64,000 bases of DNA from Pocillopora damicornis (GCF_003704095.1 NW_020844871.1:1-64000), one strand, 5' to 3'; counted from the stretch's first letter, positions 9,211 through 18,083 are shown. The notes: generated by a model not told the origin, from the sequence alone. Made by a program: numbers and translations.

Positions 9211-12200
9211 TCAAGCATTGTTTTTAAGTCTCTCGTTGAATATTATCTCTGGACAAAGAAAAGGTGTGAAGAAAGTCATTCCTTTGGTCTTCACACGCCT
9301 TGCAGCGTCAGGATTGGCAAGTTGGAGATTGTACCTCTGTAAAACAGAAGCAACAACTATTCGGGTGATTGCCAGGGCATACCGATAACCCAAGCATTTC
9401 CTTGGACCCATACCAAAGCGGAAGAGAGAGCCTGGCACTGGTCTTGCGCCGTTCGCGAAGCGACTGGGGTCGAATTTGTCAGGGTTTCTCCAATACTTCT
9501 CGGAAAAGTTCAGTGACTGGGTATCCACGCAAACGGGAGTCTGTTTAATGAGATAAAAGGGCTACGTCAGTTTTTGTTAGTTTAAATGCGCAGGCAACAC
9601 ATTGTATTCGCGTGACGTAATGTAAACACGCGAGGAGTAATTTTTATCCGCGTGTTCCTCGTTCGCGCGCATTGCTTCAAATCGCTTGCACCCAGCTCTC
9701 TAGGAACCTGGCAAAGGACTCAGATTTCAAAATTATATTAGGCAGAAAATGCGAGATCTTGCAATAAAAATGAATTTCAGCTTTTTTAACTGTAAGGAAA
9801 TTGAAATATTCACGTTTCATTAACACTGATTTAGGGCCAATCATCAGTTCAGTAACATATGGTGAATCTTTTCACAAATCTCGTGCCCAGATCCTACCGC
9901 GTAACTTAAATATAAGGACCTCACAACCGCTTAGCCGTGGAGGGTCTGGGTACAAGACTATCCCTCCGACTCTCTACTGAGGATCGCCTGTTCGCCTTTC
10001 AGGGAGCCTAGGGAGAGGAAAATAGCTGGCACATGAAAGAATTCCTCACCCCTTTTGGAATTTGATAACCTCCAATATCAGTGACAGGTTTCACTGTTCT
10101 CTCAGGGAGACTAAGCGCCAATGCTGGGTTCATCCGGGCACTTTCTTTCAGAACCATCTCCATATAAGGTAGCTTGTTATCCAGGTCTTCAGATGAACTC
10201 GGGTCAGCCCCTAATAATATATCGTCTACTTCCTGTTGAACTATTTCTTGAACGGAAGTGTAACGAGCAAGATCGGCCAAGGCAAACGAAGTGGCAGCGA
10301 AGCTGACGTCAATATTCAAGAGCAGGATTTCATTCACAGAATGAAATAGCTGTGCCAGATATAACAAAGACAGAAGTGAGTACGGAAAGGGTTTTTTTTC
10401 TCTTCTTAAAATTTATTTTTGGCCTTTGTTGTTGAGATAGGACGGAAGTTAAATGGATGAATAAATCAGTGGTTGGATGGGTACATGGATCGAATGAAAT
10501 AATTAAATAAATGAACGAACGAGCGAAAAAACGAGGGATAGATCGAACGAGCGATCAAACGGGGGATAGATGGAACGAGCGATCAAACGAGGGATAGATC
10601 GAACGAGCGATCAAACGGGGGATAGATCGAACGAGCGATCAAACGGGGGATAGATCGAACGAGCGATCAAACGGGGGATAGATCGAACGAGCGATCAAAC
10701 TAACGAGCAAACGAGCGAATGAATGAATGAATGACAGAAGGAAAGAAGGAAGGAAAGAAGGAAATGAAGGAATATAAATGAACGGACTAACGGAATGATG
10801 GACGAAAGGATCAGTAAAGGATTGAAGAATTGATAATAAATGAATCAATAAAATAAAGGAAGACCTTTCGTCTACCTCTTGCTCTCCCAAGTCGAGTGCG
10901 TGAGTCTTCAGTTGTTCCATCATGATAAAGAATAATCCATCATTAGACCTGAGTCGTCCCTCCTCGTATTCTTCAAACAAGAAAAGGTTAAACGCCTCCC
11001 ATGCTTCGTTGAAGGCCTGAGCCGTCTTGTTCACCTTACTCGGAACATAGGAGTAGAATGGCAGCCTGGTTTCACCCACATTAAACTGATTGACGGCATC
11101 CTGAAGCAAATCACTGACCTCCATGATACGTTGGAAATATTTTTGTAGGACTTCTTCTCCGTAGACGACTTGCACAAGTACACGAAGTGTGACGTTGGCA
11201 AGACCCTCCTTTTGAAGATCCACCGGCCTACCAACTGGTAAGGAATTTAGGAATGTGGTGCACTCTCGTCCAATCGTACGCAGAGTGGCCGAAACAGCAC
11301 TGGAAGAGAAGTATTTCTCGAAAGGGCCGCGGCATCGTCTCACCTCGTCACGCCCGTGGCTGGTTGCCAAGCAATTTCCTAAAATGTCTTTGAAAACGGT
11401 GCCGAGGCAGGTGAAATCTCGGTCGCGCTGGTGCGAGTAGTGGTCGGTATAGAACGAGCGAATGGCATCTGCGTCAGCTAAGATCCTGCGAGGATATTAT
11501 AAGAAAATAAAAGACCATGAGTTCTTGATCGATGTATGATAAAAAATACATACATATAAAGCACTAAGTCTAGCTATTTCGGAAAAGTTATGCATCTTAG
11601 TCGTAAGAACGAATTTCCTCGACTCCAGACTCCAGACTAAAAAGTATATACGGCTAGATCGGCTCAAGAGAGCTATCAANNNNNNNNNNNNNNNNNNNNN
11701 NNNNNNNNNNNNNNNNNNNNNNNNNNNNNNNNNNNNNNNNNNNNNNNNNNNNNNNNNNNNNNNNNNNNNNNNNNNNNNNNNNNNNNNNNNNNNNNNNNNN
11801 NNNNNNNNNNNNNNNNNNNNNNNNNNNNNNNNNNNNNNNNNNNNNNNNNNNNNNNNNNNNNNNNNNNNNNNNNNNNATAAAGGGTCATTAGGTAAATTGT
11901 ATTATGACACAACCAAAATCCTCTGGCCTGCCCCAGGCGATAAATAATGAGAGATCCTGGTAAAGGCGTTACAAATATTTTCAGTAGACATCTTAACGGC
12001 TCATTCCCAAATATGGCGAGCAGTAGGGCCGAACATTAATAAACCAGTTTTGTCATGATTGAATGTTATATAAATCAGAGACACCTGAAACTACCAATTA
12101 AAGCATTTCGACGCGTTTTTGTTTTCATTTCTGAAAACCAGCCTTGGAAACGGTGATTTACAAAGCAGAACTGCATTTTAATCAACTCATTCTTCCTTTG

Positions 12201-16766: not shown

Positions 16767-18083
16767 ATGGAAATTCCCTGGAAGCTCTACCTCTCTTGCT
16801 GGTTCCTTGGCGCCGCGGTTCAAAGCGCGGTGTTTTTTACCTTCAATGCAGCGGATTATTTCAATTACTTTTTCCCAGATCAGTACAAACCTGAAGTCTA
16901 CTTAGGAGTCACCGTCGGCGTTGGTGCAAGCTTGGGTGCGGTTTTAACGGTATTTTTTCAACCCAAAAGAAGCCATCTGACTATACTTGTTGTCACGCTA
17001 ACAGTTTCTGCGATTCTCCTGGTAATAGAAGTAGTCGTTACTCCATTGAACGCAAACGCTTTATCTAATCCAACTCGTTTTGGTTCAGTGATTGCCGTTG
17101 TCTTTGTGGCAACCGTTGTTCAAAACGTCGGCGGTGGGGCTCTGTACGGCTTCGTTGGAAAGCATTTTCCGAAATTTGGAATTCACGCGGCACAGTCCGG
17201 CGGTGTCTGCGCTTTCGCGGCGACGTTTATCATCAGGTGCATCTCCAAAGGGTCGTTTGAACATCTTCGAGACAGAGATCAAGGTTTTCGTCTCAGCGGA
17301 TATTTATTCGTCGCGTTGGTGGATCTGATAATTCTTATAGCGTGCTGTCTCATCGCCATCTTGAGGGCGCAAGTCAACTCAAATGCGTATGCGCAAGCAG
17401 GACGTTTAAACACCTCCTATGATAACAAAGAGCAGCAGCCTTTGCTCCGCAGCGATGATTACAGCGACGTCTCCCGGAAAAGAGTGATCAGAAATAACTG
17501 GACTGCACTTGCAACGGTTTGCTTGACTCTTGTGATATCTAACGCTTTATTCCCGGGAATCACCTCTCAGTTCCACGGGAATTACAACTGTTCGTCTTCT
17601 CACAACGTCACCACCTTGTCATCTGATAATCCTACAACCCCCGTTTCACCGAGCAGCGCATCAAAGTCTAGCGACCAGACGGGCTGGTTTATTGTCATTC
17701 TCTTCGGCTGTTACTCGGTTGCAGACGCTATTGGAAAAAACCTGCCAATATTCGGAATCTTCTACAACAAGAAATCGATTCTTGGCAATTGTTTGGTTCA
17801 GCTTGTTATTGCTATACCGATCCTGCTTATTTACTTCGAGCCATGTGATCGCAAACTGCAAGCTAATTGGGTGGCTTATCTTACAGTTGGTCTGCTCGGA
17901 CTGGTCAATGGCTACGGACTGTGCGCTGCCATGATGCTATTGGCCCCAGGAAAAGTGGGAAAGAAGCAAGAAGAGGGCCTGGCGACCAGTATCGGCTATA
18001 TGTTTTTACAAGTCGGAATTCTTCTCGGCATGGGAATTTCTGTGTTTCTCGTGGATTACGTGTTCGAAATAACCAAACACTGA
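16767..18083 (+). CDS. Equilibrative nucleoside transporter (ENT/SLC29) family protein, 438 aa, intronless CDS
   Basis: About 11 hydrophobic segments with a large central loop. ENT-type motifs: FNAADYF, ALFPGIT, DAIGKNL, LLGLVNGYG and the terminal GILLG. Confidence 0.85.
   Translation: MEIPWKLYLSCWFLGAAVQSAVFFTFNAADYFNYFFPDQYKPEVYLGVTVGVGASLGAVLTVFFQPKRSHLTILVVTLTVSAILLVIEVVVTPLNANALSNPTRFGSVIAVVFVATVVQNVGGGALYGFVGKHFPKFGIHAAQSGGVCAFAATFIIRCISKGSFEHLRDRDQGFRLSGYLFVALVDLIILIACCLIAILRAQVNSNAYAQAGRLNTSYDNKEQQPLLRSDDYSDVSRKRVIRNNWTALATVCLTLVISNALFPGITSQFHGNYNCSSSHNVTTLSSDNPTTPVSPSSASKSSDQTGWFIVILFGCYSVADAIGKNLPIFGIFYNKKSILGNCLVQLVIAIPILLIYFEPCDRKLQANWVAYLTVGLLGLVNGYGLCAAMMLLAPGKVGKKQEEGLATSIGYMFLQVGILLGMGISVFLVDYVFEITKH

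Follow-up and report, generated by a model that had tools for sequence, protein, structure and literature searches.

A conserved cluster of adjacent cyclodipeptide synthase, P450 and ENT-like transporter genes in a stony coral and other Anthozoa

Three adjacent and expressed host genes, encoding a cyclodipeptide synthase (CDPS), a cytochrome P450 and an ENT-like carrier, were identified in the stony coral Pocillopora damicornis, and the same trio in the same order was found in other stony corals, the sea anemone Actinia and the octocoral Dendronephthya. We therefore suggest, with a probability of roughly 0.6, that this is an ancient animal-encoded metabolic cluster for a modified cyclic dipeptide, although the biochemical coupling of the three proteins is inferred rather than shown and the product is unknown.

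To examine the gene content of the locus, a window of 64,000 nucleotides (GCF_003704095.1 NW_020844871.1:1-64000), which is the whole stretch of DNA analyzed, was searched with Pfam profiles. This determined p450 (PF00067) in two minus-strand ORFs, CDPS (PF16715, 6.3e-17) in the plus-strand ORF 14840-15394, and Nucleoside_tran (PF01733, 46.2 bits against a cut-off of 29.8) in ORF 16767-18083. Exon models with GT-AG at every intron were then built, joining five exons into a 500-aa P450 and two exons into a 232-aa CDPS. Exons were searched one by one, natural full-length database proteins (P0213, P0001, P0010) served as stand-ins, and joined translations were used to check frame and length and to read motifs. 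The features are as follows.

14014..14103, minus strand: P450 exon 1 (ATG at 14103; 30 codons), with a hydrophobic N-terminal membrane anchor
12357..12529, minus strand: P450 exon 2, with a proline-rich hinge and the start of the catalytic domain
11680..11876: assembly gap of 197 N, not filled, inside P450 intron 2 (12356-11486)
10876..11485, minus strand: P450 exon 3 (203 codons), the substrate-recognition part
10050..10349, minus strand: P450 exon 4, with the I-helix (EILLLN-x-DVS-x-AATSFAL) and ExxR as KESAR
9211..9540, minus strand: P450 exon 5, with the haem-binding FGMGPRKCLG motif and stop codon
14104..14586: 483-bp divergent intergenic region, a presumed shared bidirectional promoter whose function is inferred
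14587..14736, plus strand: CDPS exon 1 (50 codons), with the catalytic-serine motif LGISPGN
14846..15394, plus strand: CDPS exon 2 (182 codons plus stop), with Y-LLKE and VYH motifs and a poly(A) tail seen at about 15454
16767..18083, plus strand: single-exon ENT/SLC29-like transporter, 438 aa
16122..16256, minus strand: possible alternative 5' exon of the P450 lying beyond the CDPS, on weak evidence

The P450 and CDPS start codons are head to head and 483 bp apart, and the ATG of the ENT-like gene begins 1,372 bp after the CDPS stop, exactly as the sequence-only reading had given. The flanks hold PDEase_I exons (21586-24615), a Rubicon-homology domain (36901-37287) and MRP-L47 (43468-43718), which fits the PDE9, PLEKHM1 and MRPL47 neighbors proposed by that reading. 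Each of the three genes is single-copy in this 234-Mb genome.

Next, expression and splicing were examined in assembled contigs of poly(A)/oligo-dT RNA libraries from four studies. All three genes were present, with the predicted splices. The splice between P450 exons 1 and 2 (14013..12530) appeared in contigs of RNA runs X5, X11 and X17, the CDPS intron (14737-14845) was spliced out in contigs of all four runs, and contigs ran continuously over 16352-18150 across the ENT-like gene; the poly(A) tail following the CDPS was seen as a loose end of A's in X5. Database protein P0001 carries the same CDPS junction. Of note, RNA contigs from three runs left P450 exon 2 at 12356 and continued with letters matching 11455-11484 at 30/30, 29/30 and 29/30, and the 497-aa orthologue P0213 aligned without gaps across all four exon junctions, so no exon is hidden in the assembly gap. 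Minus-strand GT..AG joints 12527->16122 and 16256->16687, which would define the alternative 5' exon, appeared only in X5 and with short sides of 27-28 letters; the NCBI gene range of the Dendronephthya P450, however, also spans its CDPS.

To determine whether the linkage is unique to this assembly, the trio was searched for in other cnidarians. P450 <-> CDPS -> ENT, with identical exon boundaries, recurred in another scleractinian contig that groups with Montipora (P450 71-77%, CDPS 63% and ENT 74% identity), in Desmophyllum, in Actinia and in Dendronephthya (56-71% identity), whereas Exaiptasia retained P450 <-> CDPS only. In these five loci, P450 exon 2 had full-length tblastn matches at 70-91% identity and exon 3 was 59-80% identical over its whole length. 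Orthologues of the ENT-like protein were 64-91% identical. The head-to-head layout was also found in Dendronephthya (start codons at 7558 and 8232 of its locus), Actinia and Exaiptasia. Furthermore, Paramuricea has the P450 and ENT on contigs of the same length, 54,071 bp, and Montipora has all three on contigs of the same length, 51,913,386 bp. Extended synteny was sought and not found: nothing outside the trio is shared with the window, and HgmA, which lies next to the trio in Dendronephthya, is not in the window. Linkage unique to this assembly is thus excluded. The dN/dS values against Desmophyllum were 0.08 (P450), 0.11 (CDPS) and 0.11 (ENT), indicating purifying selection.

The CDPS is of the NYH type. 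Exon 2 alone scored 62.5 bits against a cut-off of 27, and all 84 best relatives carry PF16715. It keeps Ser37, Tyr178/Glu182 and Tyr202-His203 (AlbC numbering), with LGISPGN, Y-LLKE and VYH conserved across ten anthozoan sequences and aligned to the same residues of YvmC, and the N40, Y202, H203 signature is read in GISPGN and VYHRPW. Anthozoan CDPSs are listed among the NYH enzymes in Gondry et al. 2018.

The P450 exons 4 and 5 scored 56.9 bits (2.2e-15) and 51.7 bits (8e-14), and FGMGPRKCLG and KESAR are invariant in six species. The I-helix, however, lacks the usual acid-alcohol pair (A/G-G-x-D/E-T-T/S) used for oxygen activation. It reads L-N-I/V-D-V-S-F/Y-A-A-T, and in alignment to CYP3A5 the acid is kept as Asp but the conserved Thr is Val. 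This variant is invariant in Anthozoa and is shared with a few protist, fungal and rotifer P450s; it does not exclude the superfamily but points to atypical chemistry, so that the reaction may not be a plain hydroxylation. The family is a small orphan group: exon 3 has only 41 relatives at E<=1e-3 among 1.84 billion representatives, and the orthologues are anthozoan only, identity dropping from at least 60% to at most 39% outside them. The best solved matches were eukaryotic CYP3A, 2R1, 17A, 46A1 and 24A1, and distant kin in the 1.84-billion library are eukaryotic where named. A protein-atlas look-up returned generic arthropod CYP4-like clusters and added nothing. The sequence-only reading had likened the pair to the bacterial CDPS and P450 layouts; the P450 is not a relative of bacterial CYP121/CypX but a eukaryotic microsomal-type enzyme, and the resemblance to bacterial operons is therefore one of layout and logic, not common descent of the pair.

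The carrier was placed by its predicted fold. No solved ENT was found by phmmer or by a 24-sequence profile at E<=1, and many orthologues carry no precomputed PF01733 hit, so the profile match is marginal for the group. The AlphaFold model (pLDDT 68, pTM 0.70), however, has 11 long helical spans and a disordered 206-234 loop, consistent with the ENT fold of 11 helices with a long loop between helices 6 and 7. Its five best fold matches were ENTs, namely four human ENT1 entries (6ob6 chains A and B, 6ob7, 8tzi; TM 0.65-0.79) and then PfENT1, followed by MFS carriers. Canonical ENT genes lie elsewhere in the genome with better scores, and this protein appears to be a divergent ENT paralogue.

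Taken together, these data are best explained by a host-encoded three-gene metabolic cluster already present in the common ancestor of living Anthozoa. In the proposed mechanism, the cytosolic CDPS takes two aminoacyl-tRNAs and makes a cyclodipeptide (2,5-diketopiperazine), the divergently transcribed and ER-anchored P450 tailors that scaffold, and the ENT-like carrier moves the product or a precursor across a membrane. That the three proteins act in one pathway, the chemistry of the P450 step, and the direction and substrate of transport are inferred. The RNA contigs show presence only and not expression levels. The CDPS is of ancient prokaryote-like origin, while the P450 and the ENT are eukaryotic, so the cluster was put together in the animal lineage rather than transferred whole. 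Supportively, the nearest prokaryotic CDPS loci found have no P450 or ENT beside them. It should be noted that the genes can be uncoupled. CDPS tandem arrays occur without P450 or ENT in Desmophyllum and in another locus, L005; ENT duplicates occur without CDPS or P450 within 10 kb in Orbicella; a divergent CDPS (38% identity) has no P450 or ENT nearby; Exaiptasia has no ENT within 8.5 kb; and an Oculina CDPS copy sits beside only a P450 remnant. Moreover, automatic names for the P450 orthologues disagree (CYP3A-like versus tcpC-like).

Alternatively, the linkage might be conserved for regulatory or structural reasons only, which we consider possible but less likely. A shared bidirectional promoter, and possibly a P450 isoform whose first intron contains the CDPS, would keep the genes together while the P450 and the carrier work on unrelated substrates such as lipids, xenobiotics or nucleosides. 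The start codons are indeed head to head, 0.2-0.8 kb apart, in four species, possible nested isoforms occur in the window and in Dendronephthya, some orthologues are auto-named CYP3A-like, and the closest solved structures are xenobiotic and steroid P450s. Nevertheless, this explains the P450-CDPS adjacency but not the co-directional ENT kept downstream in five lineages; the P450 family is seen only as these anthozoan orthologues and is not a general detoxification family; and a partial duplicate in Dendronephthya copied P450 exon 2, CDPS and ENT together. Somewhat more doubtful is that only two of the three genes are partners, either the CDPS and the carrier exporting an unmodified cyclodipeptide or the CDPS and the P450 acting together. 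Exaiptasia keeps P450 <-> CDPS without a nearby ENT, and L005 and Desmophyllum carry CDPS and ENT pieces without a P450, but the full trio is present in Scleractinia (both major clades), Actiniaria and Octocorallia, and all three genes have similar dN values. Bacterial contamination or a mis-assembly across the N gap, conceivable because CDPSs are mostly bacterial and the region contains a gap, is refuted by the GT-AG introns spliced in poly(A) RNA, the joining of exons 2 and 3 across the gap, the same arrangement in independent assemblies of other species, the animal neighbors, and an identity of only 33-36% to the nearest prokaryotic CDPSs found.

A more speculative and improbable possibility is that the P450, lacking the oxygen-activating threonine and sitting next to a carrier from a nucleoside/nucleobase transporter family, does coupling chemistry. 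It might join a nucleobase to an aromatic cyclodipeptide, as bacterial GutD-type P450s do, or might instead oxidize the diketopiperazine core, as fungal GliC/TcpC do; the ENT-like protein would then handle the nucleobase-like conjugate. This would be a new class of animal signaling or defence metabolite, made by a pathway about as old as the Anthozoa.

Biosynthetic gene clusters encoded by animals themselves are rare, and we found no published description of such an animal cluster. An animal CDPS has been known to be active since 2011, but nothing was known about the fate or purpose of its product. If the product is a signal or a defence compound in reef-building corals and their relatives, it bears on coral chemical ecology, host-microbe and host-symbiont communication, and natural-product discovery.

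Among known systems, Nvec-CDPS2 of Nematostella vectensis, the one characterized animal CDPS, makes cWL and cWF and is likewise an anthozoan, NYH-type, intron-containing host gene; no neighboring P450 or transporter is mentioned for it in the papers we read. Its P1 pocket motif is nearly the same (LGFPWYIF against IGFPWFFF here), whereas the P2 pocket differs (ERVKRWP against SVACRWP). The cluster-linked type (S-x-A-C/S-RWP) is listed as unclassified and uncharacterized in Gondry et al. 2018, and the pocket motif IGFPWFFF/SVACRWP belongs to no characterized specificity group. In fungal epipolythiodioxopiperazine clusters, eukaryotic P450s (GliC/SirC/TcpC) hydroxylate the diketopiperazine core inside a gene cluster, and the scaffold is made by an NRPS, not a CDPS. 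NCBI names the Dendronephthya orthologue 'tcpC-like' (TcpC function, PMC4938161), and a Penicillium P450 is 29% identical over 349 aa and shares the N-I-D I-helix variant; as the similarity is low and was not measured against GliC or TcpC themselves, this is a lead and not membership. Octocoral terpene cyclase/P450 gene clusters appear to be another animal-encoded biosynthetic cluster in anthozoans that includes P450s (see also PMC11784711), probably terpenoid in chemistry and restricted to octocorals, whereas the cluster here is predicted to be peptide-derived and tRNA-dependent, includes a transporter, and spans both Hexacorallia and Octocorallia.

In bacteria, CDPS plus P450 (plus transporter) is the standard layout for tailored diketopiperazines (PMC7954767; PMC2922099). 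The mycocyclosin genes of Mycobacterium tuberculosis pair a CDPS (Rv2275) with a dedicated P450, CYP121, that performs non-standard chemistry on the cyclodipeptide (PMC7954767), but form a two-gene cluster with no transporter; CYP121 was not among the 60 best-scoring solved matches of the coral P450 family, of 224 chains passing E<=1e-10. In the pulcherriminic acid genes of Bacillus, the scaffold synthase YvmC, the P450 CypX/CYP134A1 and an exporter also sit side by side, both CDPSs are NYH-type, and YvmC is the closest solved structure to the anthozoan CDPS (3oqh, E 7.5e-8). The Bacillus genes, however, form a co-directional operon with a soluble class I P450, whereas the coral genes have introns and are divergently transcribed, with a eukaryotic membrane-anchored P450 unrelated to CYP134 and an ENT-like carrier instead of a classical MFS exporter.

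To define the genes in 9211-18083, we first searched the region with Pfam, which placed cytochrome P450 in two minus-strand ORFs, cyclodipeptide synthase (CDPS, PF16715) in a plus-strand ORF, and Nucleoside_tran (ENT/SLC29, PF01733) in a 438-aa plus-strand ORF. Both strands were then read, and splice sites and frames were checked by script, giving the following models.
14103-14014, minus strand, P450 exon 1
12529-12357, minus strand, P450 exon 2
11485-10876, minus strand, P450 exon 3
10349-10050, minus strand, P450 exon 4
9540-9211, minus strand, P450 exon 5
14587-14736, plus strand, CDPS exon 1
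14846-15394, plus strand, CDPS exon 2
16767 (ATG), plus strand, ENT-like gene, 438 aa
All introns of the P450 are GT-AG and its product is 500 aa, whereas the CDPS product is 232 aa. The P450 and CDPS start codons are 483 bp apart, head to head, and the ENT ATG lies 1,372 bp after the CDPS stop, exactly as given in the sequence-only reading, which had put these distances at 483 bp and 1.37 kb. It is worth noting that a 28-bp minisatellite (6.6 copies, 95% matches) at 10516-10700 sits in P450 intron 3 and creates the long spurious extension of the mechanical ORF 10639-11370.

A stretch of 197 N at 11680-11876 lies inside P450 intron 2 (12356-11486). To determine whether coding sequence was hidden there, RNA contigs were examined, and those of three runs ended their match at 12356 and continued with 30 letters that matched 11455-11484, the start of exon 3, at 30/30, 29/30, and 29/30. 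Furthermore, a 497-aa orthologue from a 1.8-kb transcript-sized contig (P0213, 72% identical) aligned without a single gap across all four exon junctions of the model. These two lines of evidence show that no coding sequence is hidden in the gap.

The flanks carry multi-exon animal genes, namely, PDEase_I exons at 21586-24615, a Rubicon-homology domain at 36901-37287, and MRP-L47 at 43468-43718. Poly(A) or oligo-dT RNA libraries from at least four studies contained about half of the sampled words of 12300-18150, and contigs of four such runs were then aligned with the stretch. The CDPS intron was removed in all four runs and P450 intron 1 in three, a run of A's followed the CDPS at about 15454, and cover over the ENT gene was continuous from 16352 to beyond 18150. 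Because these are assembled contigs, they show presence and splicing but not expression levels. A near-identical database protein (P0001, 229/232) also carries the CDPS exon junction. Of note, one RNA run (X5) had minus-strand GT..AG joints 12527->16122 and 16256->16687, pointing weakly to possible alternative P450 5' exons (16122-16256 and about 16687) lying beyond the CDPS, which would nest the CDPS in a P450 intron. Likewise, the NCBI gene range of the Dendronephthya P450 (5365-9895 of the Dendronephthya locus L007) spans its CDPS, while isoform X2 starts between the two genes. Another run (X11) showed a GT..AG joint that skips 118 bases around the ENT start codon (16760-16879), which may be a minor alternative 5' splice of the transporter transcript.

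The CDPS has the catalytic residues of its family, Ser in LGISPGN, Tyr/Glu in Y-LLKE, and Tyr-His in VYH, as well as the NYH signature. All are conserved in ten anthozoan sequences and align to the same residues of YvmC, the closest solved structure. The specificity pockets were then read with the positions given in Gondry et al. 2018 (Data Set 4). The window enzyme reads P1 IGFPWFFF and P2 SVACRWP, and the same script reproduced the published motif of Exaiptasia KXJ06569 (VGFPWFLF/SAACRWP) from the database protein P0042, which validates the mapping. This S-x-A-C/S-RWP type is listed there as unclassified, whereas Nvec-CDPS2, the one characterised animal enzyme (products cWL and cWF), has a similar P1 pocket but a different P2 pocket (ERVKRWP). 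The product of the window enzyme is therefore unknown.

The P450 has a hydrophobic N-terminal anchor, ExxR, and the FGMGPRKCLG haem motif. Its best solved relatives are eukaryotic microsomal or mitochondrial enzymes (CYP3A, 2R1, 17A, 46A1, and 24A1), and bacterial CYP121 and CYP134 were not among the best-scoring matches. Its I-helix is unusual in that the sequence L-N-I/V-D-V-S-F/Y-A-A-T replaces A/G-G-x-D/E-T-T, and aligned to CYP3A5, the conserved threonine is a valine. This variant is invariant from octocoral to stony coral. The family is small, as exon 3 found only 41 relatives at E<=1e-3, and 6 at E<=1e-30, among 1.84 billion representatives, and a full-length orthologue found anthozoan proteins at 60% identity or more and then nothing above 39%. 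The named distant relatives are eukaryotic: Gefionella, Ancoracysta, Rotaria, and Penicillium. Several share the N-x-D helix variant. In particular, a scattered set of eukaryotic P450s (P0185-P0204 and P0233; malawimonad Gefionella, Ancoracysta, Penicillium, and unnamed metagenome proteins) shares the D/N-E-I-L-x-x-N-x-D/E I-helix variant and the FG-L/M-GPR-K/R-CLG haem motif, although Penicillium P0233 shares the helix variant only, and this set may be an unrecognised P450 clade with non-canonical oxygen activation.

The transporter passes the Pfam cut-off, but no solved ENT was found by sequence or by profile. An AlphaFold model from 24 orthologues (pLDDT 68, pTM 0.70) has 11 long helices and a disordered loop after the sixth, and the best fold matches of this predicted structure were human ENT1 (TM 0.65-0.79), then PfENT1, then MFS carriers. 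The genome has better-scoring canonical ENT genes elsewhere. This gene is therefore a divergent, intronless paralogue.

Relatives of the CDPS, the ENT-like protein, and the P450 all occur in many anthozoans, and we next asked whether the linkage is conserved. The DNA around them was retrieved and searched exon by exon with tblastn.

Table. P450 (minus strand), CDPS, and ENT-like genes at other loci; percentages are identities to the window genes.
L006, 624-kb coral contig whose CDPS groups with Montipora: P450 exons 2-5, 71-77%; CDPS 63%; ENT 74%
L008, Desmophyllum pertusum: P450 80-91%; CDPS present; ENT copies present
L011, Actinia tenebrosa (anemone): P450 498 aa; CDPS present; ENT 442 aa, 67%
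L007, Dendronephthya gigantea (octocoral): P450 56-71%; CDPS present; ENT 64%
L012, Exaiptasia: P450 500 aa, head to head with CDPS; CDPS present; ENT none within 8.5 kb

In L006, L008, L011, and L007, the order and orientation are P450 <-> CDPS -> ENT, as in the window. L007 also has a partial second copy made of P450 exon 2, a CDPS, and ENT pieces, followed by a third CDPS. Every window exon aligned end to end in these loci, so the intron positions of both the P450 and the CDPS are shared. Outside the trio, however, nothing is shared with the window. In Dendronephthya, a homogentisate 1,2-dioxygenase gene (aromatic amino-acid catabolism; L007 2029-5098) lies immediately next to the P450, but it is not next to the cluster in the window or in the other loci, and just downstream of the trio in L006 (15236-18090) lie ORFs with Pox_VLTF3, integrase/chromodomain, and phospholipase A2 domains, which look like a mobile-element or virus-derived insertion. 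The unit has therefore stayed together while its surroundings changed.

Against Desmophyllum, dN/dS was 0.08 for the P450, 0.11 for the CDPS, and 0.11 for the ENT; against more distant taxa dS was saturated, but pN/pS stayed at 0.2-0.36. Moreover, dN rose in step for the three genes with taxonomic distance, as expected for joint vertical inheritance, and each gene is single-copy in this genome (234.35 Mb, 4,393 contigs).

Nevertheless, the unit is not immutable. Desmophyllum pertusum has a separate tandem array of intact 236-aa, two-exon CDPS genes (MU826828.1, 3,082,578-3,117,632; loci L002-L004) that repeats every ~4.74 kb, with at least 8 copies by position and no P450 or ENT inside it. On the tree, the copies are very close to the cluster copy, so this is a recent lineage-specific amplification. 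Another retrieved locus, L005, has several CDPS copies and an ENT fragment. In Orbicella faveolata (MZGG01001471.1), two 446-aa ENT-like genes lie 5.2 kb apart, with a 146-codon fragment upstream and no CDPS or P450 within 10 kb, and a histone gene there matches window 7982-8093. Upstream of one Oculina patagonica CDPS copy (CM126640.1; 4135-5077 of locus L001), only P450 exon 2 and the first 48 codons of exon 3 were found, which is probably a decayed P450, and a second Oculina CDPS (LOC144658551) lies on a contig of the same length (38,537,115 bp).

As for its origin, the anthozoan CDPSs form one clade (support 100/100), well apart from the nearest prokaryotic sequences found by a pattern scan, which sees only sequences carrying two chosen motifs and so is not exhaustive. 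Those sequences are 33-36% identical, come mostly from DPANN-type archaeal MAGs, and have no P450 or ENT beside them. Taken together with the eukaryotic nature of the P450 and the ENT, the evidence says that the cluster was assembled in the animal lineage around an anciently acquired CDPS and was not imported as a bacterial operon.

How the cluster most likely works is inferred. The soluble CDPS would divert two aminoacyl-tRNAs to make a diketopiperazine, and given that pocket P1 resembles that of a Trp/Phe/Leu-using enzyme, at least one residue is probably hydrophobic or aromatic. The P450, presumably anchored in the ER with its catalytic domain in the cytosol and fed by NADPH-P450 reductase, would then modify the diketopiperazine, and the ENT-like facilitator would move the product out of the cell or into a compartment. 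The missing I-helix threonine suggests chemistry other than a standard hydroxylation. Bacterial CDPS-linked P450s perform aromatisation, C-C and C-N coupling, dimerisation, and nucleobase transfer (PMC7954767). The automatic NCBI name of the octocoral orthologue is 'tcpC-like', and TcpC is the GliC/SirC-type oxidase of the diketopiperazine core in fungal clusters (PMC4938161); other orthologues, however, are auto-named CYP3A-like, and this remains only a lead.

Full-text searches of open papers and preprints, which do not cover subscription-only papers, returned no description of an animal CDPS linked to a P450 or a transporter. An active animal CDPS has been known since 2011, coral and anemone CDPS sequences have been listed (PMC5816076), and animal-encoded terpenoid clusters are known from octocorals. 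CDPS + P450 (+ exporter) is the classical bacterial arrangement (PMC2922099; PMC7954767), and the cluster examined here appears to be that bacterial logic rebuilt from eukaryotic parts, conserved across Anthozoa.
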